Shown in pieces: positions 1,401-53,863 of a DNA stretch of 64,000 bases. The stretch's first letter is position 1, and every line of letters starts with the position of its first letter. Below the pieces are notes generated by a model. It had not been told where the DNA came from, did not search any database, and saw only the letters and a program-made list of their open reading frames with translations. This stretch comes from Mytilus californianus (lineage: Eukaryota), in NCBI RefSeq assembly GCF_021869535.1, contig NW_026262701.1, forward strand, positions 96,844,001 to 96,908,000. Direction: 5' to 3'. The position numbers and the translations under genes are program-made.

Positions 1401-2646
1401 TAAAAGATCCGTCGCTATTGATTTTGAAAATGCAAATATTTAAAATAACTTGTATATATTGTTTTAAATCATACGGGTGGGTAGGGAATGTGTTTCTCTC
1501 ACCCCGACTGCTTTCTCTCGGCTTCTCTTCTCTTTCTTCTGGATCCATTTCCTTTGTGCATCAATCTGAATCTATAATATTTATACCTCACGGAAATAAA
1601 TGTTATAGAATGATTATATTCAATTTTCGTAATAATGTTTCCTCTGTTATAAGAAACAAATATACGTTGTAATCAGCACTATGCAGTTCAAACATGAAAT
1701 TCAATTGATATGAGCTTGAATATACCTTTCGCCTATCTTATACGCAGGTAATTGAAATCTGTAAATCACATTTGTGTTAAAGTCTAATTTTTCAACCTCA
1801 GCGTCGAGTATATACCATTTCGTAACAGTCTGATAACATAGAATGTCTACCAAAGTAATTTTAGTCACGAATTATATGACACAAATTACTTAAAATAGCA
1901 TAAAAAATTAAGATCTGGAAAAAAAACGCAAAAAGGATCTAAGCTAAAAATCACAACACACAAAGACATTTATCTGAAAAGAAATGAAATTAAAGATATT
2001 AACTGTTTTGATGGATGATATCTATGGACCGTTGACTAATAATTTGTTGACTGGTTAGTTGATGCTTAATATTTAATATGGTAAGGTTATGTTGTTTGAA
2101 GAAAACAGTTCAAATATAGATGGTTTCCATTTTCATGTTAAAAATGGAAAACCAAATTTGTTCTAGCAATAATAAAATAATTACATGACATAATATAACG
2201 ATATTCGTCACCGATAACACACCCTTTCGTTCTTTGAAAAATTGCACAATTTGAGAAGTAATAAAGAAACACAACCTTCGACATACAAAAATCGAACATT
2301 TTTTTAGACACCTTTTTTTCTAAATTTGGTTAGTGTCGCTTCTTTAAAACGGATAACACATTCATAGTTATAGTCTTACCGATTTCTGCCTTGAATTAGC
2401 AGGTAAAACAAGCAAATATAAAATGTATTAACAAATACTTATAATTCTTTTTTTTGTTCTTTGTCCAATAGGAAAACACCTATGCTCCTTATTTATCCCT
2501 AAACATTAAATTGATTATGGTACCAAGGATATGTTCTGATGGTTTGAAATTAACTTACTAACATACTAATATTAACTCTTTGTGTATGTTCATTTCTAAC
2601 CATTAATAACAATGCACATACCTTGTTGGGTGAATGATCTTTTCAG

Positions 2647-3351
2647 AAACATTAACTACTGAAGCAGATACAACCGAATCCGTCAGCACAGAATATTCTA
2701 CCGTTTACGACGTAACAGATACATCTGAATCGCAGACAACACAAAACATGTTAATGATAAGTGATATTACAACAGATTTACTGAGTACGGATTACACGAC
2801 GTCTTTTGATATTTCAACGACAAATGAGCAGTCGACATTTCCTATAACATTTGAATCGACTATTGCAACAGATGAACTGACAACAGAATACCAATACACC
2901 ACAATGAGTCAATCCATGACAACAAATATTTTCGAAATATCTACGGAACAATATGCAACAACACAAGAGGAATCAACAACACAAAATGACGCAACAGCTC
3001 AGGAATTCACAACACAAAATGAAGTTACAACACGTGAAGAATCAACGACATTACAGCAGGTTACAACAAGCGAAGAATCAACTACAAAAGAGATGCAAAA
3101 TGAAGCTACAACTCGAGAGGAATTAACAACACAAAATGAAGCTTCAACTCAAAAGGACCAAACAACACATTATAAATTGACAACAGTAGAGGAATCAACA
3201 ACAACAGAGGAAGCAACAACACATGATGAAACAACAACAAGAGATGAAACAACAACACAATGTCTATTAGACCCAAAAGTTACCACAAGCAATGACGTAA
3301 CTCTAAAAATAACTACAGCCAATATAATATATAGAAGCACAAATAGTTTAG
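2647..3351 (+). CDS. Mucin-like membrane protein, large Thr/Glu/Ser-rich exon (235 codons)
   Basis: Acceptor tttcag at 2641-2646 and donor TTAG|GTACTT at 3351/3352; phase 1-1. Lies within ORF 2634-3446, with strong Thr bias and TTxEE/TTQNE repeats. Confidence 0.85.
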
Positions 3352-4089
3352 GTACTTTTATTTTCATGTTGATGTATGACATGTATGAAACTATATTTAA
3401 CGAGTCTCTTTTCTGCAAGGCATTGGTGACGCTAGTTCTTTTATAGTTAGCATATGCATGTAGCCTTTTATCTTGCATTTTCATGTTCTCTTCATTCTGG
3501 AATGTGTAAACGGGTTAATGTTAAAAAAAAGAATGATGAACATAAATTCAGATTTTTACCCAAATATTTTTTAAAAGAAAGCAACTCAATTTTCTTCTCC
3601 CGTACAAAGAAATTCGAGCTATAAATGGTTGTAAATGGTTCGGGTTTTTTTTTGTCGAATAGAAATCTCGCAAAACCTTCTTATTGAGTATTCGTTTTTC
3701 AGTTGATACTGCGTTTCCTACAAAGACTAACAGAATGTAAGAGTTCTTATTTGCAAAGTCTAAGTCGCCATCATATAAATTGCTTGATCTTACGGAAATA
3801 TCTGTCACTGCTTACATTAGTTTACATAGTTTTAAGTTAGGGTTTAGATTAATCAATCTAATAGTGTATATATGTAATATTTTGTTGACCAGTAGCTGAT
3901 ATTTATTTTCATTTTGGTTTGTTTTGGCCATCTTAGGGTTTTATTTTCAAATACCACGTGCATGATTTTTTTTTCTCTAACCAACATTTGCAAAATTTTG
4001 TACAATGAATTTCCTTTTGATTCCAAATTTTCGGCTTCAAAATCAAGTTAAAACCAATTCAGATGACTACAAAAGTAACGTAGATTTGT

Positions 4090-29639: not shown

Positions 29640-30115
29640 TGTGGGGGAGGGGGGGGACACATAAAATACTGGGCCGTCTGTCTGTCTGGTCTTGTAAGTG
29701 CACTAAATTCTTGCCAGATTTTTAAAAATTTATATCATACATGTAAGTTTATATCAGCAATGTCTCTGATAAGTTATAAAAACAGTGTTGATAAACTATT
29801 TTTAAAAGAGTAATGCCCCTTGGAAATATTAAATATATGGAAAATTTCATTGTTAGCGCTCTCATGTGTACAATTCTTGCCAGATTTTTATCAAATTTAT
29901 ATTAACAGTTTATGTCAGCACTGTCTTGGATAAGTTCGAAAAATCAGTGCCGATCTAATATTTTTAAAAGAGTTATGGCCCTTTGGAAATATTAATTATA
30001 TGGAAAATTGCATTGTAAATGCTCTCATGTGTACAATTTTTGCCAGATCAGTGCCAGTCAAATATGTTTAAAGGAGTTATGCCCTTGGAAATATTAATTA
30101 TATAACGCAGGGGAC
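29640..30115 (+). mobile_element. Degenerate HINE-like element with ~3 x ~170-bp units
   Basis: GTCT microsatellite near the 5' end. TCTTGCCAGAT / TTTTGCCAGAT recurs at ~29709, ~29875 and ~30040. Confidence 0.5.
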
Positions 30116-30176: not shown

Positions 30177-31980
30177 ATTAGTCCCCTACCGACGAAGTCG
30201 AAGGGGGCTTTAGGTTTGCACTCTGTCCGTCTGTCCATCCGTCAGTCAGGGAAATAGGTTTTCCACACTTTTCATGCCCCGGCCATAGCAGAGGGGGCAT
30301 TAAATTTTACCCTTGTCCGTCTGTACGTCCATCCGTCCATCTGTCCGTACGTCCCAAAATTGGTTTCCGTTCTCTAACTTTAGTTTGCCTCAACCAAATG
30401 TTATGAAACTTATACACAATGCTTATCAACACAAAACACAGGTCAAGTTTAAATTTGGGTGGCGTCACTTTTACTGTTCTAGAGTTATGCCCCTTTACAA
30501 ATGGAAAAATTGCTGAATTTTTCGTTTCCGTTCTCTAACTTTAGTTTGCCTCAACCAAATGTTATGAAACTTACACACAATGCTTATTAACACAAAACAC
30601 AGGTCAAATTTGAATTTGGGTGGCGTCACTTTTACTGTTCTAGAGTTATGCCCCTTTACAGATGGAAAAATTGCTGAATTTTTTGTTTCTGTTCTCTTAC
30701 TTTAGTTTGCCTCAACCAAATGTTTTGAAACTTATACACAATGCTTATTACCACAAAACACAGATCAAGTTTGAATTTTGGTGGCGTCACTTTTACCGTT
30801 CTAGAGTTATGCCCCTTTACAAATGGAAAAATTGCTGAATTTTTCGTTTCCATTCTCTAACTTTAGTTTGCCTCAACCAAATGTTATGAAACTTGCACAC
30901 AATGCTTATAAACACAAAACACAGGTCAAATATGAATTTGGGTGGCGTCACTTTTACTGTTCTAGAGTTACGCCCCTTTACAGATGGAAAAATTGCTGAA
31001 TTTTTTGTTTCTGTTCTCTTACTTTAGTTTGCCTCAACCAAATGTTTTGAAACTTATACACAATGCTTATTACCACAAAACACAGATCAAGTTTGAATTT
31101 TGGTGGCGTCACTTTTACCGTTCTAGAGTTATGCCCCTTTACAAATGGAAAAATTGCTGAATTTTTCGTTTCCGTTCTCTAACTTTAGTTTGCCTCAACC
31201 AAATCTTTTGAAACTTATACACAATGCTTATTACCACAAAACACAGATCAAGGTTGAATTTTGGTGGCGTCACTTTTACAGATCTTGAGTTATGTCCCTT
31301 TATAACGTTATATGCAAGCGGGGGCATTATCTTTGTCCCATTGACACATTCCCAATTTTTTTCTTCACGCTTGAAGATATTGATTTGATATTTAGTGTAT
31401 TGTTTTATCATGACAAGTTACAGTTCAAGTTCAAATTTTGTTCTGGTCTGATGATTTTGTGCAGAGTAATGGTCCTTGGACTTAGAAAATTCACTAAAAT
31501 AATCAGTTTTCCGCACTTTTTTTTGTCATTCTTGAATATATTGATTTGATAATTGGTTTATAGTTTTATCATGACAAGTTACAGTTCAAGTTTGAATTTT
31601 GTTCCGGTCTGATGATTTTGTGCAGAGTTATGGTCCTTGGACTTAGAAAATTCACTCAAATAATCAGTTTTCCACCCTTTTTTTTGTCATGCTTGAAGAT
31701 ATTAATTTGAAAATTGGTATGTAGTTTTATCATGACAAGTTACAGATCAAATTCAAAGTTTGTTCTGGTCTGATGATTTTGTGCAGAGTTATGGTCACTT
31801 AAATAATCAGTTTTCAATACTTTTTTTCGTCATGCTTGAAGATATTGATTTGATATTTGTTATATAGTTTACACCAGGACAAGTTATAGATCAAGCTAGA
31901 ATTTTGTTCCAATACAATGAATTTTTAACCGGTAGGGGACTATGTATTGCCATGCAATACTCACAGAATGCTTTTGTTTT
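30177..31980 (+). mobile_element. Outer HINE-like element (~165-bp internal units) containing a nested HINE
   Basis: Perfect 12-bp subTIR AGTCCCCTACCG (30180-30191) / CGGTAGGGGACT (31930-31941). 3' hairpin GTATTGC-CAT-GCAATAC (31944-31960) and GTCY microsatellite. Units with tcatgacaagttacag repeat across 31360-31900. Confidence 0.85.
30271..31358 (+). mobile_element. Inner HINE-like element with 6 x 161-bp satellite monomers
   Basis: 5' ATGCCCC..GGGGGCAT hairpin and GTCC microsatellite. Monomers start at 30364, 30525, 30686, 30847, 31008 and 31169. 3' GCGGGGGCAT plus hairpin. Confidence 0.9.
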
Positions 31981-46340: not shown

Positions 46341-47521
46341 TTTTTTATGCCCCCGCCGTAGCGGAGGGGGCATTAAGTTTTACCCTTGTCCGTCTGTACG
46401 TACGTCCGTCCGTACGTCCCGAAATTGGTTTCCGTTCTCTAACTTCAGTTTGCCTCAGCCAAATGTTATGAAACTTAAACACAATGCTTATTACCACAAA
46501 ACACAGATCAAGTTTGAATTTTGGTGGCGTCACTTTAACCGATCTAGAGTTATGCCCCTTTATAAAAGGAAATATTGCAAAATTTTTAGTTTCCGTTCTC
46601 TAACTTAAGTTTGCCTCAACCAAATGTTATGAAACTTATACACAATGCTTATTACCACAAAACACAGATCAAGTTTGAATTTTGGTGGTGTCACTTTAAC
46701 GGATCTAGAGTTATGCCCCTTTATAAAAGGAAAAATTGCAAAATTTTTATTTTCTTCTAAATATCAAGTTTATATAATATATTTTTAAAATTGGAGTTAT
46801 CTTCCTTTGACCATGATTATAGTTGGATCAACTAAAATCAATGCTTTATACAATGCAATGTTTAATATTGACTTCCACTGATAAAACACAGATCAAGTTG
46901 AATTTGGGTAGTGTCACTTTAACCATTATTGAGTTATGCCCCTTTATAAATAGAAAGATTGCAAATTTTTTTAGTTTCCATTCTGTAACTGAAGTTTTCC
47001 CCAGCCAAACATTATGAAACCTATACACAATATTCATTACCACAAAACTCAGTAAGGATCAAGTACAATTTTTTTGTTTCAGTTCTCTAACTTGAGTTTG
47101 CCTCAACCAAATGTTATGAAACTTTTACACAATGCTTATTACTACATAATACAGATTAAGTACGAAATTAGGTGGCAACACTTTTACCATTCTAGAGTTA
47201 TGTCCCTTTATAAACATAAAAATTGCTGAATTTTTTAGTTTGTCTCAACCAAATGTTGTAAAACTTATACACAACTGTTCTAGAGTTATGGGTGTTTACA
47301 AATAGAAAAATTGCTGAATTTTTAGTTTCTGTTCTCTACTTAAGTTAGCCTCAACCAAATGTTATGAGACTTACACACAATGCTTATTACCACAAAACTC
47401 AGATCAAGTTCAAATTTGGGTAGCGTCACTTTTACCGTTCTTCAGTTAAGTCTCTTTATAACTATATGATATGCAAGCGGGGGCATCATCTGTGTCCACA
47501 TGTGGACACTATCCACATTTA
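46341..47521 (+). mobile_element. HINE-like element of the 161-bp family (~6 partly degenerate monomers)
   Basis: 5' stem ATGCCCCC-GCCGTAGCGGA-GGGGGCAT. 3' GCGGGGGCAT (47477-47486) followed by the perfect palindrome GTGTCCACATGTGGACAC (47492-47509). Confidence 0.85.
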
Positions 47522-47611: not shown

Positions 47612-48036
47612 TTTTTTGTGCCCGGAAGAAGCAGAGGTGGCATTAAGTTTTACCATTGTCCTTCTATCCGTCCGTACATCCCGAAATTGGTTTCCGTTCT
47701 CTAACTTAAGTTAGCCTCAACCAAATGTTATGAATCTTATACACATTGCTTATTACCACAAAACATAGATCAAGTTTGAATTTGGTGGTGTCACTTTTAT
47801 AGTTCTAGTGTTATGCCCCTTTACAAATGGAAAAATTGCTGAATTTTACATTTCTGCCCACTAACTTAAGTTTGCCTCAACTGAATGTTATGAAACATAC
47901 ACAATGTTTATTACTACAAAACTCAGATCTAGTACGAATTTGGGTAGCATTACTTTTACCGTTCTTGAGTTATGGGCCTATATAACATATGCAAGCGGGG
48001 GCCTCATCTGTGTCCCACGGACACATTCCCCACTTA
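47612..48036 (+). mobile_element. HINE-like element of the 161-bp family (~2 monomers)
   Basis: Degenerate 5' hairpin, the same monomer, and 3' GCGGGGGCCTCATC-TGTGTCCCACGGACACA. Confidence 0.8.
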
Positions 48037-48614
48037 TTTAATGATATTTTTGTATGGTTTCTTATCCGTGGAACCATTAAATGATCAAAATGGTAGGTAT
48101 CTAGTTAATGTTAACTGTAAATTTGTGCATTTTGGAATTCATATCTGTATATTTAGTAACCTACCAAAAGTATTGATAAACCCTTTACCAAAAAGAAATA
48201 TTGCTATAAATCTGGCTTCAGTGATTAAAAATGTCGCTTGGTTGCAAATTTTCTAAACTGCCATATACACTCATATTGGTTGGTTTCTTTTTAACCACCA
48301 AAAAAAATTTTGAAAATAACACTTGATAAATTCCTGAATCGCTTTTCTGGATTTACCTTCTGGAACGCTCAAAGACAAACATTCTAAAGCTAGGGCTGTA
48401 TTAGAACTGAAACAGTTGAAGAGCTATTCGACCAACAAGAACATAAAACAATAGCCAAATCCATCTAAGGACAAGTGAAGAGAATCTTGCATTTTAAAAT
48501 TATTTGAAGGCACTGAAGCCCGTTCTTCAAAACAGCACTGCAATGCAGAGGAGTATTGATATTCTTATAAACTAATACAAAATAATTTTTAGAAATGACC
48601 ATGTTAGAGTGAAA

Positions 48615-49025
48615 TTAATAGGGCCCCGCCTAGTGGTGGGTCACCCTATAGTGATCAGTCTGTTTGTTCTCCGTAACAAATTGTGTCTGCTTTCTATCTA
48701 GAGAACCGTTGTAATTTCATACTTTATACTTGATATGTATATTAACCAACACTAGAGGGTGTGTCATAATGTATGTGCAACTTCTTAGGTCAAAGGTCAA
48801 GGTCAAAAACTGGTTTCAGTTGACAACCCCATGTCCTATGGTACAGATCAAGTCCGCTCTATATCATGAGAACCGTTATGGTTTCAAAGTTTATACTTGA
48901 CATGTATATTAATCAACACTAGAGGGTGTGTCATAATGTATGAACAACTTCCTAGGTCAAAGGTCCGTTCGTCTGTCTGTCGGTCCGTCTGTTTCTAACA
49001 AATTGTGTCCGCTCTATATGACTTA
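48615..49025 (+). mobile_element. Partial HINE-like element with ~2 internal units
   Basis: 5' hairpin-like GGCCCCGCC..GGTGGGTCACC and a duplicated block (atacttga.atgtatattaa.caacactagagggtgtgtcataatgtatg). No clear 3' end. Confidence 0.5.
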
Positions 49026-49147
49026 AAAAAGTGCTTCATATCAGCTTATTCATACAAATTTTTTACCACACGTTATTTACAGCGGGGCCCACAGAGATGA
49101 CTCCTATCTCAATGATGTCTAGTTAATTCAACAATCTTTTGACAGTA

Positions 49148-49355
49148 CTGTAAATTCAGAAATTATTGCGTGCGTTTATTATTGCGATTTTTCAAGTAAG
49201 AACAAAAATGCGAGTTTAATTGTTGCGATTTTAGGAAAAGCTTTATACAGATATACATACATAACAGCTATCAGAATAGTTTTCATTTTTGCGATACTCA
49301 AGGAGTCGCATTATTCGCATTAATAAAAACCTCGCAATAATTTCTGAATTAACAG
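49148..49355. mobile_element. ~208-bp MITE (copy 3 of 3)
   Basis: TA|CTGTAAATTCAGAAATTATTGCG ... CGCAATAATTTCTGAATTAACAG|TA. Confidence 0.8.
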
Positions 49356-50100
49356 TAAATGGTAACTTAATTATGAAGTTGTTGGATGGTATATATGGAT
49401 CATCATTGAGATCTTCTATAAAACAAATTGTGACCAAATATATTGGCTTTTGTATACTATACCGGTATTTGCCTTTTTGAGCAGGAGAAATTTGAATTAT
49501 GTGAAATGTCCAAATGGTGCATAGAACTTCAGTATCTTGTAGCTTTGTATCAGTAACACTAGACCAATGCCACTGCTGGTGGACTACAACACCAGAGGTA
49601 ATTAATAGCCTGGTAACCAAAAGTAAACCAAAAATTATTCACTTTATACAAAAACATTCGCATTCCTGGAGCGTCAATTTATTAACACATACACGGATGA
49701 ATAGCAAAATCATTAAAGAAAATCTGTAAAAAAATCAATTTGATCGGCAATTAAGTCAGTGGGTTTGTCGTTTATGTGAACCATGGTAAATCAAACATTG
49801 AATTCCCTCACAAAATCTTATTACACACTTTAGGCCAGTTGATGTACAGTGTCCAATCACAGTTGTTAGTTTATGGGAACAAATCCAGTCTGTTTTGAGC
49901 AAAAGACTTGACAAGTATTCAAACGAATTTGATTATCAAAGGGAAATTGATGTGATTTGATCAACGATTGATTGTGTATCCCTGTAAACTCCTTCTTTGA
50001 ACTATTGATATTTAAGATAAAAAGAAGAAATTATTTTGTTCCAAATTTGTTGAAATCGTTGCGAGAATTTCGAAAAAGTTTTCTATCCCCCATTGAACAA

Positions 50101-50152
50101 TGACATACGTGATGTCAGTTTAACAAGTCAACAGCACAAGCCGCTATATATA
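50101..50152 (+). promoter_or_regulatory. Candidate proximal promoter of the TRIM-PHR gene: palindrome TGACAT-ACGTG-ATGTCA plus TATA-like run
   Basis: Dyad at 50101-50117 and TATATATA at 50145-50152, about 90-140 bp upstream of the ATG. Motif presence only. Confidence 0.3.
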
Positions 50153-50242
50153 TCAATTTTTAAGAGGTAAACAAAGATAATAATTATCTATAGATATATA
50201 CTAGTAAATGTATATTACTTCCTTTTTCATGTGGGCGTTAAA

Positions 50243-51859
50243 ATGGCGACATCGATTGAGAGTCATGTCGTTGATATAACTACATGTGGGATTTGTCTGG
50301 AGAAATTTAACATTCCAAAGTATTTACCATGCTTACATACATTTTGCGAACGTTGCATTCAGACGTATATATCTTCCAAATTTGAGAAAAGACATACGCA
50401 AAGTATTCATTGTCCGGTATGTAGGACCAATGTAACTTCACCGAATGAAAACTATTCTTCTGAGGAATGGGCTAAAGCATTACCGCTAAATTTTCTCATT
50501 GCTGGGTTATTACAGAGGGAAAAGGTGGAAAGTCCGCAAAAACAGTGCATGGTATGTGAACGAATGGAAAATAAATCGGATGCCATCTTCATATGTTTTG
50601 ATTGCTCTGATTTGTTGTGTGATAACTGTTGCAAACATCACAAGGCGAACAAATATACAGCGGACCATGAAATCAATCCAATTGAACAGCTTACATCAGA
50701 CATTCATTTATTAAAATCTTTTAGAAACAAATGTTCTGAACATAAGGGAAAAGACCTTGAGCTTTATTGTGTCGATCACGAGATTCCCTGTTGTTCGATG
50801 TGTGTATCGATCTATCATCGCAAGTGTGAAAAAGTTCTATCTATAGAGGATGCTGCTCGAGATTACAACGGAGCAGAGAAGGTAAAGGATTTGAGAACCC
50901 AGCTCGAAAAAGTAGAAGATGATATTAAAGACTTAATTAAAGATCGCCAGTCTGCTATGGACAAGTTAGAAAGTCAGTATAGGGGTCAGAAAAAGAAACT
51001 TGATAATGTTTTCAGTGAGCTTGTTTCTAAGATAAATGATCTCAAAGTTCGAAGAGAGACAGAACTTTTGAAAATATACGATGAGGCAAAAGAAAATATT
51101 GATATGATTAAATTGATCTTTACAAATAAAAAGAAAAATATAGAAAACGAGAAACAAATTCTTGACGCATGCACGAGTAAGGCATCCGATGTTCAAGTCA
51201 TGGTAGAAGTCAAGAGATTAAAGCGACATCTAGAGGAACATAAGAAAATTATACAAAGTAAAGCTGACGAAATCGTTGATTATAAACTTTCTTTTCAAAA
51301 TGAAAATATTTCTGATTTGCTTGTAAGAACAGAAAGTTCATGCAAAATTTCGATGGATAAGACAAAAACTGTTACAAGAACAGGATCCACAAAATTGTCA
51401 GAGATATATAGTTGTAATCGTTTAATGTTAAATGCATCTTGTTGGGATGTTAATGGAGACAACGATGCTATATGTTTTCGAGTGTCTAAAGAAATTGAAC
51501 TGTGCGGAATTCTATCTTTTGTATGTAAAGATGGCGCATCAACATGTAACCTGACTGCTTTTGTTAAAGATGATTCAGATCAAGATCTGGTTGTAGTGTC
51601 GGATACAATTGACAGTAAATTAGCCGAGAACAAACATGTCAAGGTCCATTTTCTGAAACCCGTTAAACTATTAGCTAATAAAAAGTACCATGCTATTGTA
51701 GTGATGACAGGTCCACAATGTTATTCTGGCAGAAATGGGACAACTGAAGTAGACAGCAACGGTGTACGTTTTACGTTTGAAAAATCTCAATTTGATAACA
51801 ATGGGACATCTACCACTGGAGGTCAAATTCCTGGTTTTTTGTTTAGAATTCTTCTGTAA
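50243..51859 (+). CDS. TRIM-type RING E3 ligase with uninterrupted CDS: RING-Bbox1-Bbox2-coiled coil-PHR domain, 538 aa
   Basis: C3HC4 RING (CGIC...CLHTFCERC...CPVC, 50285-50422), two Cys/His B-boxes and an E/K-rich heptad region. The C-terminus carries the PHR-type signature (DAICFRV...F.KPV.L...KKY...NGT...GGQIP.FLF). ATG in context aaaATGG; AATAAA at 52011-52016. Confidence 0.9.
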   Translation: MATSIESHVVDITTCGICLEKFNIPKYLPCLHTFCERCIQTYISSKFEKRHTQSIHCPVCRTNVTSPNENYSSEEWAKALPLNFLIAGLLQREKVESPQKQCMVCERMENKSDAIFICFDCSDLLCDNCCKHHKANKYTADHEINPIEQLTSDIHLLKSFRNKCSEHKGKDLELYCVDHEIPCCSMCVSIYHRKCEKVLSIEDAARDYNGAEKVKDLRTQLEKVEDDIKDLIKDRQSAMDKLESQYRGQKKKLDNVFSELVSKINDLKVRRETELLKIYDEAKENIDMIKLIFTNKKKNIENEKQILDACTSKASDVQVMVEVKRLKRHLEEHKKIIQSKADEIVDYKLSFQNENISDLLVRTESSCKISMDKTKTVTRTGSTKLSEIYSCNRLMLNASCWDVNGDNDAICFRVSKEIELCGILSFVCKDGASTCNLTAFVKDDSDQDLVVVSDTIDSKLAENKHVKVHFLKPVKLLANKKYHAIVVMTGPQCYSGRNGTTEVDSNGVRFTFEKSQFDNNGTSTTGGQIPGFLFRILL

Positions 51860-53054
51860 ATGTAATCTTTACTCAGAAACTTTATTATTCTTAAAAGAAA
51901 TGTAATGGTTTTTTTTTCAATGTGTGATATGACGCTGAATATAACATAGTGTATAGCCGCCTTTTGTTGATAATGTTCAACGCTTTCTACACACATAAAA
52001 CTACAAGTAGAATAAAAACGGATCAAAGTATAATGTTTAATCATGTGTGATTTAAGGTAGCTGATGTGTCTAAATTTACGACGATAGATTTTCTAAAACT
52101 TTATAAATGGCAAAATCAAAAGCGCAAACACACCAAACGAGTGGAAAACAACTGCCTTGTACCTGACTTGGTATAGGCATTTTGTTATGTAGAAAATGCT
52201 GTGTTAAACCTGGTTTTATAGCTTGCTAAACCTCTCACTTGTATAACAGTCACATACAATTCCATTATGTGGTTCTGGAACAAAGTTATCGTCCTTAGAT
52301 TTTCAATGTACAGACATAGTCCCTTGTGTCGACAGACAGTGTATTACTTGCAATTTTTGTTCATACCCCTTCCAAATTTATTTGTTCATGTTTTATGCCT
52401 CAAATAGCAAGTAAGCATTGTAGGGCGGGGTTGAAATTACACTGAAACACAAAATTTAAGTCATGAATTTAAAAGTAAAGTAGTGATTTGGTTCAGCTGA
52501 AAAGGGTTTGAAAATTAATATGGCTGAAGTGGTCAAAAGAATTGAAAGCATGAGTCTAAAATTGAGGCGGAGGAAGCCGTGTCTGTTGTTCTTTTAATTT
52601 CTAGTTCTAAAAGATATATTAATGGAATCCAAATCAGAAAAGTTTGGATTGTTAAAGGAAAGAACATTGTCAATATATCTGAAATTAAATGATCTGGCTT
52701 CTTTTACAAGTGTCTGATGGAACTCTGACTCATAAACTGTTAAAAAAAAAGACAAGACACGCATAGCTCGGATGAATTATTCAAACTGCAAAATATATTT
52801 TTTACAAAGTAAAATGAAACGGTCAATTGCATTTTAGAATTTTTACAGGTAAGTCTTTTCAAGTGCCCGTTCTTTTGATTTGGCTATCTGCCACATGAAA
52901 TTTGCGACTCGCTAAAAGTGCATGTGACCTCTTTCGCCGCCAAATTTTGTTAACGTTTTTCACTAGAATTTTGTGGTCAACTCAACTGTTACACTTTTGC
53001 GCATATAAGGACCAAGTTTGAAGATTTAATTCATCACAGCGTTAAAACGCTGCC

Positions 53055-53863
53055 ATGCCAAGGTTGGACTCTGCTATTCGAAATATCGTCATCGGTTGCC
53101 TTCAGGCTGGAGTATCCCAAAAAAAAGTAGCAAGAACTGAAAATGTTAACCAGAGCACAATTTCGCGACTGTAGAACAAATACCAGCAGACTGGCTGTAC
53201 TAAGGACCTCCCGAGGAGTGGACGACCTCGCCTAACGACTCCTTGACCAGATCGCTACAACCGGCTATTTCATCTCCAGAATCAAACCGTTACCGCAACA
53301 GACACTGCAGTTGGGAGACCAGGATTGAGAAGAATCAGCTCACAAATAGTCTGCAATCGACTGCTACAACATGGCATTAGACCCAGGAGGGCGTTACACA
53401 GTACACAGACGGAATAGAGTCCGATGGTCCAACAGATTGAGGGGCTGGATATTCCGCAACTGGCGCAGACTCTGGTTTAGTGATGAGTCCGTTTTATGCT
53501 TCAGAAATGTGATGGAAGAACTCGTGTCTACCGGCGCATGATTTTTTTTTGCTTCCTCGTGTGTCCTCACACAGTGCGTTTAACAATGGACTACCTTGAG
53601 CAGAATAACATCAATGTGCTACCTTGACCTTTCAAATCACCGGATTTGAATCTTTTTGAGCACCTATGGGACCAACTTGATAAACGTGTACGCCAGCGTC
53701 AACCCCCGCCTCAGAGTGACAGACCCTTGATCAACTCCGACAAAAGTTGCAACAGCAATGGCGAGCAATTCCACGCACCAACATTAGAACATTGATAGCA
53801 TCCATGTCGTCGAGGAGATACGAAGCAGTTTTAGCAGCGAGAGGTGGTCATACACGGTACTAA
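53055..53863 (+). pseudogene. Degenerate Tc1-family transposase
   Basis: Translates with stops and frameshifts as MPRLDSAIRNIVIGCLQAG..., LPRSGRPR, WRRLWFSDES (first catalytic D), SPDLNLFEHLWDQL (catalytic E motif) and a C-terminal GGHTRY-stop. The central part with the second D is deleted. Confidence 0.9.

Follow-up and report, generated by a model that had tools for sequence, protein, structure and literature searches.

A single-exon TRIM-type gene of Mytilus californianus with a C-terminal PHR domain

Introduction

TRIM ubiquitin ligases are classed by their C-terminal recognition domain, which decides the target. Can a PHR domain occupy that position, and is a gene built in this way a working gene or a by-product of genome turnover? 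The question is raised by a locus of the mussel Mytilus californianus, contained in a stretch of 64,000 nucleotides (assembly GCF_021869535.1, contig NW_026262701.1, positions 96,844,001 to 96,908,000 of the forward strand) that is called the window here and whose first letter is position 1. A first examination based on the letters of the DNA, hereafter the sequence-only reading, had described at 50243–51859 a gene coding for a RING finger, two B-boxes, a coiled coil (together RBCC) and a PHR domain. The evidence presented below favours a functional, transcribed Mytilus gene for a TRIM-type RING ubiquitin ligase (E3), with the PHR β-sandwich as its C-terminal recognition module. A probability of about 0.72 is given to this explanation.

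Results

Domain architecture of the window protein

An open frame without a stop codon spans positions 50231–51859 of the forward strand, on which all features of the gene lie. From the ATG at 50243, chosen on the N-terminal residues common to all relatives, it forms a complete single-exon coding sequence (50243–51859) of 538 codons plus stop. An identical protein is already on record in the protein collection (P0001).

The N-terminal C3HC4 RING finger (residues 15–60, positions 50285–50422) scores above the curated Pfam cut-offs of two models, PF00097 (31.4 bits against 21) and PF13445 (35.2 against 25.2). Its zinc ligands C15, C18, C30, H32, C35, C38, C57 and C60 make up a complete C3HC4 set, and the closest solved RING domains by sequence are those of TRIM2 and TRIM3 (E = 4e-16 to 1e-12). 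From general knowledge of RING domains bound to ubiquitin-conjugating enzymes (E2), we take I17 and P58 to be E2-contact positions and R61 to be the linchpin residue. These three residues and all zinc ligands of the RING and the B-boxes are invariant in eight family members that are 35–63% identical to the window protein.

The type 1 B-box (residues 102–142, positions 50546–50668; Pfam span 102–144) is recognized by its ligand spacing and by structure matches. The pattern read off the translation is C-x2-C-x12-C-x2-C-x4-C-x2-C-x3-H-x8-H, with ligands C102, C105, C118, C121, C126, C129, H133 and H142. The segment matches the solved type 1 B-boxes of TIF1-beta (6o5k, E = 1.5e-4), MID1 (2jun) and PML (2mvw), and its score with the Pfam model PF22586 is 24.3 bits, under the cut-off of 27. 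The type 2 B-box (residues 164–195, positions 50732–50827) is covered by PF00643 over residues 162–194, with 29 bits against a cut-off of 24.1, and matches the type 2 B-box structures of TRIM63 and TRIM54.

A coiled-coil helix follows (residues ~201–310, positions 50843–51172), for which antiparallel pairing with a second copy is predicted, and then a linker (residues 311–388, positions 51173–51406) that is the least conserved and lowest-confidence part of the protein. In the full-length AlphaFold2 (AF2) model, the predicted local distance difference test (pLDDT) is below 50 at residues 302–355 and 366–385. The PHR domain occupies residues 389–536 (positions 51407–51850) as an all-β sandwich with a terminal G-Q-I-P-G-F-L-F motif; its start had been placed at about 51401, close to the boundary of about 51407 found here.

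None of the standard C-terminal domains of TRIM proteins (PRY/SPRY, NHL, filamin, FN3, PHD/bromo, MATH, ARF, COS, transmembrane segment) was found in the window protein with Pfam at E-values up to 10. The C-terminus fits none of the classical TRIM classes C-I to C-XI and is a match to PF08005 instead. Pfam likewise gave no match in the window protein to BTB (PF00651) or BACK (PF07707), and a BACK profile built here matched none of the TRIM-PHR proteins. The RING-B1-B2-coiled coil-PHR architecture is confirmed as real, far beyond chance. Every element that the sequence-only reading had seen in one uninterrupted frame was recovered by the frame listing, Pfam and structure matches, as was the position of the protein outside the classical classes.

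The C-terminal domain has the PHR fold

The C-terminus had first been called a PHR domain from a residue pattern, with a Pfam comparison proposed as a check. When this was run, PF08005 matched residues 393–534 on profile positions 2–150 of 151, with an E-value of 5.6e-27 and 95.6 bits against a cut-off of 23.6. Among solved structures, sequence matches were obtained to BTBD2 (3no8, E = 3e-9) and to the first PHR domain of MYCBP2 (PHR1, 3gbw, E = 1.6e-8). An AF2 model of the C-terminal 159 residues is all-β with a pLDDT of 92.6. Searched with Foldseek, this model superimposes on 3no8 with a template-modelling score of 0.83 and on PHR1 and PHR2 of MYCBP2 with 0.79–0.84 (0.80 for 3gbw, 0.79–0.84 for 3hwj), and matches beyond the solved PHR domains fall to E > 1e-4. 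The identification as PHR thus stands in sequence and in fold, and the domain is about equally close to the BTBD2 and MYCBP2 structures.

Orthologs, synteny and selection

Full-length relatives with RING, B-box and PF08005 matches, ranging from 83% down to 37% identity, occur in M. galloprovincialis, M. trossulus, M. edulis, M. coruscus and M. californianus. The first three species have single-exon orthologs of 540 residues with 81–83% identity, which lie at syntenic loci. The window segments 41.6–46.3 kb and 55–62 kb, together with the gene between them, are collinear with these three loci at 79–88% nucleotide identity, and in M. trossulus and M. edulis the gene is flanked on either side by genes with immunoglobulin domains. 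As the locus is collinear in four Mytilus species, the gene is a positional ortholog that already existed when M. californianus and the M. edulis group diverged.

Selection was examined as pairwise ratios of nonsynonymous to synonymous divergence (dN/dS, Nei-Gojobori) among the four orthologs. The ratio is 0.30–0.43 for the whole gene, 0.09–0.23 for the RING, 0.13–0.31 for the B-boxes, 0.28–0.51 for the coiled coil and 0.38–0.71 for the PHR domain, where dN exceeds its value in the RBCC part by a factor of about two. Purifying selection acts on the gene; it constrains the zinc domains most, and the PHR domain evolves fastest. A fast-changing recognition end is the usual pattern for TRIM proteins with variable targets.

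A different role for the PHR domain has to be weighed here. In a real TRIM ligase that chooses its substrates elsewhere, the domain could be a dock for localization or assembly, a role already suggested for PHR in MYCBP2 and RPM-1. The C-terminal domain of TRIM proteins is generally the specificity module, and a domain that evolves faster than the rest of its protein is a better fit to a variable target than to a fixed dock. In favour of the dock, the window domain is as close to PHR1 and PHR2 of MYCBP2 as to the PHR domain of BTBD2, and the PHR-bearing human proteins BTBD1 and BTBD2 co-localize with cytoplasmic bodies of TRIM5delta (PMC3002306). The C-terminal halves of the same two proteins, PHR domain included, bind the client TOP1 (PMC3002306), which argues for recognition. 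They show that a PHR-bearing region is able to bind a client, and they hint at a connection with TRIM proteins; they contain nothing direct on mussels. A docking role appears unlikely, and a PHR domain that recognizes targets is preferred.

The loci of M. galloprovincialis, M. edulis and M. trossulus (L044, L045 and L046) are about as distant from each other as they are from the window. Among these three, the flanks are 85–92% identical and the dS of the gene is 0.22–0.31. Such divergence seems large for species so closely related; old haplotypes, introgression or a region that is hypervariable in general could be the cause. That the divergence of about 12% among the three copies is specific to the gene was considered and rejected, the non-coding flanks being equally divergent.

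Transcription of the gene and presence of its DNA

Contigs assembled from three runs with the same species label and at least three samples (X1, X3 and X4) were aligned to positions 47900–53800 of the window. The longest transcript-like contig, of 1784 bp from run X1, covers 50237–52020 on the forward strand, that is, the coding sequence and about 160 nt of 3′ untranslated region; run X3 gave a contig of 1704 bp (50237–51939) and run X4 three pieces over 50246–51992. These 5′ and 3′ limits are contig limits and not mapped transcript ends. An AATAAA hexamer is present at 52011–52016. Contig depth, 6–15x over the gene, drops to 0 in the unique flanks 49476–50066 and 52628–53800. Because coverage is confined to the gene and the unique flanks are silent, the pattern is that of a transcriptome and not of genomic DNA, and it is from this coverage pattern that we infer that the gene is transcribed. 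The raw RNA-seq run X21, which is certain to be RNA and of which about 6% was read, yielded almost no reads on the open reading frame, which means that the gene is expressed at a low level or conditionally.

Two contigs begin at 50237. A splice site was considered for this position and rejected, since no AG acceptor stands in front of it; the start may be due to a break in the graph, arising from the N-terminus common to the paralogs. High-copy repeats adjoin the gene on both sides (49082–49475 and 52037–52627), and in the transcript-like runs they reach summed contig depths in the thousands, with many loose ends.

The three runs also bear on the possibility that an assembly or gene-calling artefact joined a TRIM gene to a neighbouring PHR exon. 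Their contigs run unbroken through the junction between coiled coil and PHR domain and cover the whole coding sequence, which answers the call of the sequence-only reading for expression across this junction. Mis-joined gene models do exist in the family, as in P0140, where a PHR domain precedes a B-box and coiled coil, but nothing else was found in favour of an artefact. The window gene is a single frame without a stop, and the same build recurs in four independent assemblies and at four other intact loci of the genome. The artefact is effectively refuted.

The DNA of the gene was recovered in all five DNA samples of the species returned by a search in which samples without the gene would not be listed. 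Sampled words of the gene were present at 99% in the likely source sample and at 73–88% in the four others.

Intact and broken copies in the genome

A six-frame scan of the 1.65-Gb assembly gave 61 PF08005 matches. Five intact single-exon RING-B1-B2-coiled coil-PHR frames are present: the window gene and copies at C121:98.947 Mb, C165:98.576 Mb, C121:3.462 Mb and C110:125.395 Mb. At least five further copies are broken, two by frameshifts and one by two stops, the others being a C-terminal fragment and a stop-riddled copy at C143:39.43 Mb. The lineage of P0022 is intact in M. edulis and M. galloprovincialis and is a stop-riddled pseudogene in this genome, and the M. edulis lineage of P0024 is without an ortholog here, with a best match of 41%. 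The TRIM-PHR subfamily evolves by birth-and-death turnover.

Such turnover raises the question of whether the window gene is itself a lineage-specific, dispensable copy that drifts towards a pseudogene and is intact in the reference by chance, a possibility that the sequence-only reading had entertained. Besides the broken copies and lost lineages, the near-absence of reads in run X21 is what would be expected of such a copy. Against it, the frame is intact at a syntenic locus in four species, the dN/dS values are well below one (0.30–0.43 overall, 0.09–0.31 in the zinc domains), the zinc ligands and E2-contact residues are all conserved, transcript-like contigs were obtained from three runs and the DNA is present in the five samples. 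Gain and loss do occur across the family, but the suggestion of a dispensable gene does not hold for this locus and is quite improbable.

Most of the other PHR matches in the genome are BTB-BACK-PHR genes. Queries with family members gave about 2,000 first-look candidates for further RBCC genes, and about 80 matches were scored. Most of these lie in long single open frames of about 650 residues, and the C-terminal ~300 residues of the relatives sampled have no Pfam match.

Origin of the PHR domain and of the single-exon gene

An unrooted tree of 98 PHR domains was computed with IQ-TREE. All 23 TRIM-PHR domains (23/23) fall on one side of a single branch, with an ultrafast bootstrap of 95, an SH-aLRT (Shimodaira–Hasegawa-like approximate likelihood-ratio test) value of 71 and presence in 94% of the bootstrap trees. 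As these domains form one clade, the tree indicates that the subfamily probably acquired its PHR domain once.

The donor is less clear. The best-scoring PHR domains outside the family (106–112 bits, against 123–240 within it) all belong to BTB-BACK-PHR proteins, and these are also the neighbours of the TRIM-PHR clade in the tree. The canonical BTBD ortholog of this genome (L001) groups with PHR1 of MYCBP2 and is not nearest to TRIM-PHR, and the PHR1 and PHR2 clades of MYCBP2 are separate from the TRIM-PHR clade. A BTBD-type donor is compatible with these data and would be the most economical choice, though the connecting nodes have support of only 42–46 in an unrooted tree. The proposal that a BTBD-type module was moved onto a RING ligase is plausible: it agrees with the nearest domains by sequence, while among solved structures the PHR domains of MYCBP2 are about as close as that of BTBD2. 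A PHR domain and a RING in one polypeptide have a precedent in MYCBP2.

TRIM proteins of Mytilus and oyster that are without PHR share the RBCC part at 29–46% identity and have another C-terminus with no Pfam match. Those of Mytilus cover only 57–70% of the window protein. Since the similarity ends at about residues 335–375, the swap point is probably in the linker before the PHR domain, a region that carries no intron today.

The intronless coding sequence and the flanking high-copy repeats had led to the suggestion of an origin by retroposition, and both would fit a recent retrocopy or chimeric retrogene in a transposon-rich region. Four Mytilus species, however, share the locus with its flanks and its single-exon structure. 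The intact paralogs and most of the ~80 RBCC matches also lie in single frames, so intronlessness is a trait of the family and no intron-bearing parent is evident. No poly(A) tract or remnant is present 3′ of the gene; target-site duplications were not searched for. The marks of a processed retrogene are thus missing from the collinear locus, its single-exon relatives and its 3′ end, and a recent retrocopy is very improbable. Retroposition may have occurred long ago, at the root of the bivalve RBCC expansion as a whole, but this would not bear on the window gene in particular.

Distribution of the architecture

A profile of eleven TRIM-PHR PHR domains was searched with HMMER against 1.84 billion representative proteins. 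Among the best 150 of 1163 matches, TRIM-type N-termini were found only in the Mytilus family and its fragments and in two proteins from run assemblies, P0020 and P0104, which are divergent (best matches in this genome of 46% and 38%); of the organisms with a name, none other than Mytilus contributed a RING-B-box-PHR protein to these 150. The long matches are MYCBP2-like, and the remainder, as sampled, are BTB-BACK-PHR proteins. PF08005 is absent from the nearest oyster TRIM proteins. Word-index searches with the PHR region and with an alignment of eight sequences gave no new taxa, a result of little weight since the latter search missed P0104. The ESM Atlas contained no large cluster combining RING or B-box with PHR, although absence from it is no proof. 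Judged by named records, the architecture is confined to Mytilus, in the sense that every named member comes from this genus and not as a proven absence elsewhere. To that extent the expectation of a lineage-specific fusion is upheld.

The term PHR never occurs in the two main surveys of TRIM evolution, Sardiello 2008 and Marin 2012 (PMC2533329, PMC3503706). In the literature searched, which included papers on bivalve and mollusc TRIM proteins, no paper was found that joins TRIM or B-box with a PHR domain, and the papers retrieved for the two terms together concerned the plant photolyase homology region. Public annotation does contain TRIM-PHR proteins, but their automatic names (for example TRIM56-like, TRIM2/3 or meiotic P26-like) are misleading. 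Neither the architecture search nor the TRIM surveys showed RBCC-PHR as a widespread class already described, and TRIM-PHR is a TRIM variant absent from the literature searched.

Predicted dimer of the coiled coil

AF2 predicts a continuous helix over residues 212–310 with a low pLDDT of 56–69. When two copies of residues 160–385 were modelled, the homodimer scored 0.69 against 0.01 for the best control. Of proteins with solved structures, 21 of 30 that are pairs of one chain reach this mark, compared with 0 of 23 that are single chains. Three runs agreed in at least 92% of the contacts, with a partner pLDDT of at least 84. The numbers of residues in contact, for example 293:232 and 246:279, add up to about 525, as for helices that run antiparallel around residue ~262. 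The coiled coil is thus predicted to form an antiparallel dimer of the TRIM type.

Discussion

The favoured explanation can be put as a mechanism. The N-terminal C3HC4 RING would recruit an E2 charged with ubiquitin. As in other TRIM proteins, B-boxes and long helix would together build an antiparallel homodimer, with the RINGs at its ends. The linker may then fold the two PHR domains back to the middle of the rod, where they would bind a target for ubiquitination. The subfamily, which is small, probably arose once, when a PHR domain replaced the C-terminal region of an RBCC lineage expanded in bivalves; the domain acquired would be most like those of BTB-BACK-PHR proteins, a group with a large expansion of its own in this genome.

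Several points weigh against this explanation. The E3 activity is putative, as is the binding of a ligand by the PHR domain. The raised dN/dS of the PHR domain, with all values below 1, could be due to relaxed constraint and not to adaptive change. The RNA label of runs X1, X3 and X4 is only guessed, and run X21, for which it is certain, is nearly blank on the gene. The restriction to Mytilus rests on named records and on the best 150 of 1163 profile matches, with P0020 and P0104 standing outside the named set. The full-length AF2 model is poor, with a mean pLDDT of 61.5, and the packing of the domains was not drawn from it; the high score of the homodimer may reflect the memory of the model for solved TRIM coiled coils.

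Among known systems, the TRIM/RBCC ligases are the closest to the N-terminal part. By sequence the nearest are TRIM2 and TRIM3, for the RING, and also TRIM56, TRIM45 and TRIM71-like bivalve TRIM proteins; the order of RING, B1, B2 and coiled coil is the same. The single-exon coding sequence is shared with the bivalve TRIM expansion. The difference lies at the C-terminus, where these ligases carry filamin/NHL, PRY-SPRY, COS-FN3, PHD-bromo, MATH, ARF or transmembrane modules and the window protein carries PHR; the nearest PHR-less paralogs of Mytilus and oyster have in its place a region of about 300 residues with no Pfam match.

The Cullin-3 adaptors BTBD1, BTBD2, BTBD3 and BTBD6 resemble the window protein in having a C-terminal PHR domain on a component of a ubiquitin ligase. 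In the adaptors, BTB and BACK precede the PHR domain, whereas the window protein has neither and no route to Cullin-3, so that any ligase activity would be intrinsic, through the RING. MYCBP2, Highwire and RPM-1 combine, like the window protein, PHR and a RING-type ligase domain in one polypeptide. In MYCBP2, which has about 4,000 residues or more, two PHR domains lie in the middle and the RING at the C-terminus; the window protein is 538 residues long and starts with the RING, followed by B-boxes, coiled coil and one PHR domain at the C-terminus.

A third comparison is offered by metagenomic proteins in which an N-terminal RING is followed by PHR domains, as in the window protein (P0103, P0105 and P0108). 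They have four PHR domains in tandem and no B-box detected by Pfam, and these domains sit on a long, fully supported separate branch of the tree. This looks like an independent combination of RING and PHR.

The RBCC-PHR family adds a class that neither the standard TRIM schemes nor the two main surveys of TRIM evolution include. For the PHR domain, which is poorly understood, it offers a second and simpler context for the study of binding, a self-contained putative E3 of 538 residues in place of a giant of 4,000 residues or a Cullin-3 complex. The find fits a wider pattern of this genome, in which RBCC modules are recombined with unusual C-terminal domains and BTB-BACK-PHR genes are greatly expanded, and both patterns bear on how bivalves, which are without adaptive immunity, diversify their intracellular ubiquitin and immune repertoire. 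It holds no surprise of principle, as domain shuffling is expected in expanded invertebrate TRIM families and the proteins are already in public annotation.

In vertebrate TRIM5, TRIM21 and TRIM25, the PRY-SPRY domain is the recognition surface. A speculative and rather doubtful extension is that the TRIM-PHR proteins are mussel-specific intracellular immune sensors or restriction factors in which PHR takes the role of PRY-SPRY, and that the fusion acts as a ‘Rosetta stone’. If so, a fast-evolving PHR surface for pathogen or danger molecules would be presented in pairs on an antiparallel dimer, and PHR-bearing BTBD proteins and TRIM proteins would act on the same targets, which would echo the co-localization of BTBD1/2 with TRIM5delta.

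Additional observations

Of the 61 PF08005 matches, which reflect the large BTB-BACK-PHR expansion, most are last exons of about 350 residues, several of them in tandem clusters and some with stops. Clusters are found, for example, at G000:C13:71.64–71.74 Mb, C165:86.28–86.45 Mb and C94:4.47–4.55 Mb, and the loci concerned include L016, L018, L019, L022, L023, L026, L028, L029 and L035–L037; vertebrates have only a handful of BTB-BACK-PHR genes. Four BTB-BACK-PHR frames, L030, L031, L033 and L034 (G000:C99:110.01 Mb, C102:0.92 Mb, C121:24.15 Mb and C99:76.39 Mb), are of equal length (433 residues) and identical in their first 40 residues although they lie on three contigs. This suggests that duplication dispersed them very recently or that a mobile element carries the gene. 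In the tree, a very long branch leads to their PHR domains.

Single-exon RBCC frames of about 650 residues, 30–44% identical to the N-terminus of TRIM-PHR, also occur in tandem, for instance at G000:C35:8.35–8.45 Mb, C86:2.90–2.93 Mb, C46:25.62–25.67 Mb and C100:0.31–0.38 Mb. Several contain single in-frame stops.

The proteins with a RING and four PHR domains (P0103, P0105, P0108 and P0212; L047:10001–13021) are about 1,000 residues long. Their host metagenomic contigs have a dense, protist-like layout with neighbours that code for Ank, cyclic-nucleotide-binding (cNMP-binding), TTL and PI3/PI4-kinase domains. Other unusual PHR architectures were seen in P0095 (1923 residues), P0098 (1790 residues), P0110 (1095 residues) and P0101 (610 residues); this set comprises proteins with three or four to five PHR domains and no other Pfam domain, and one BTB-BACK-PHR-PHR protein.

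Within the window, satellite arrays with a unit of 161–163 bp lie at 30363–31796 and 46428–46754, and also at 29706–30048; copies of this unit also occur between the genes at the syntenic loci of M. galloprovincialis, M. trossulus and M. edulis. The sole other open reading frame of at least 150 residues in the window codes for 270 residues at 2634–3446 on the forward strand and has no Pfam match at E ≤ 0.001.

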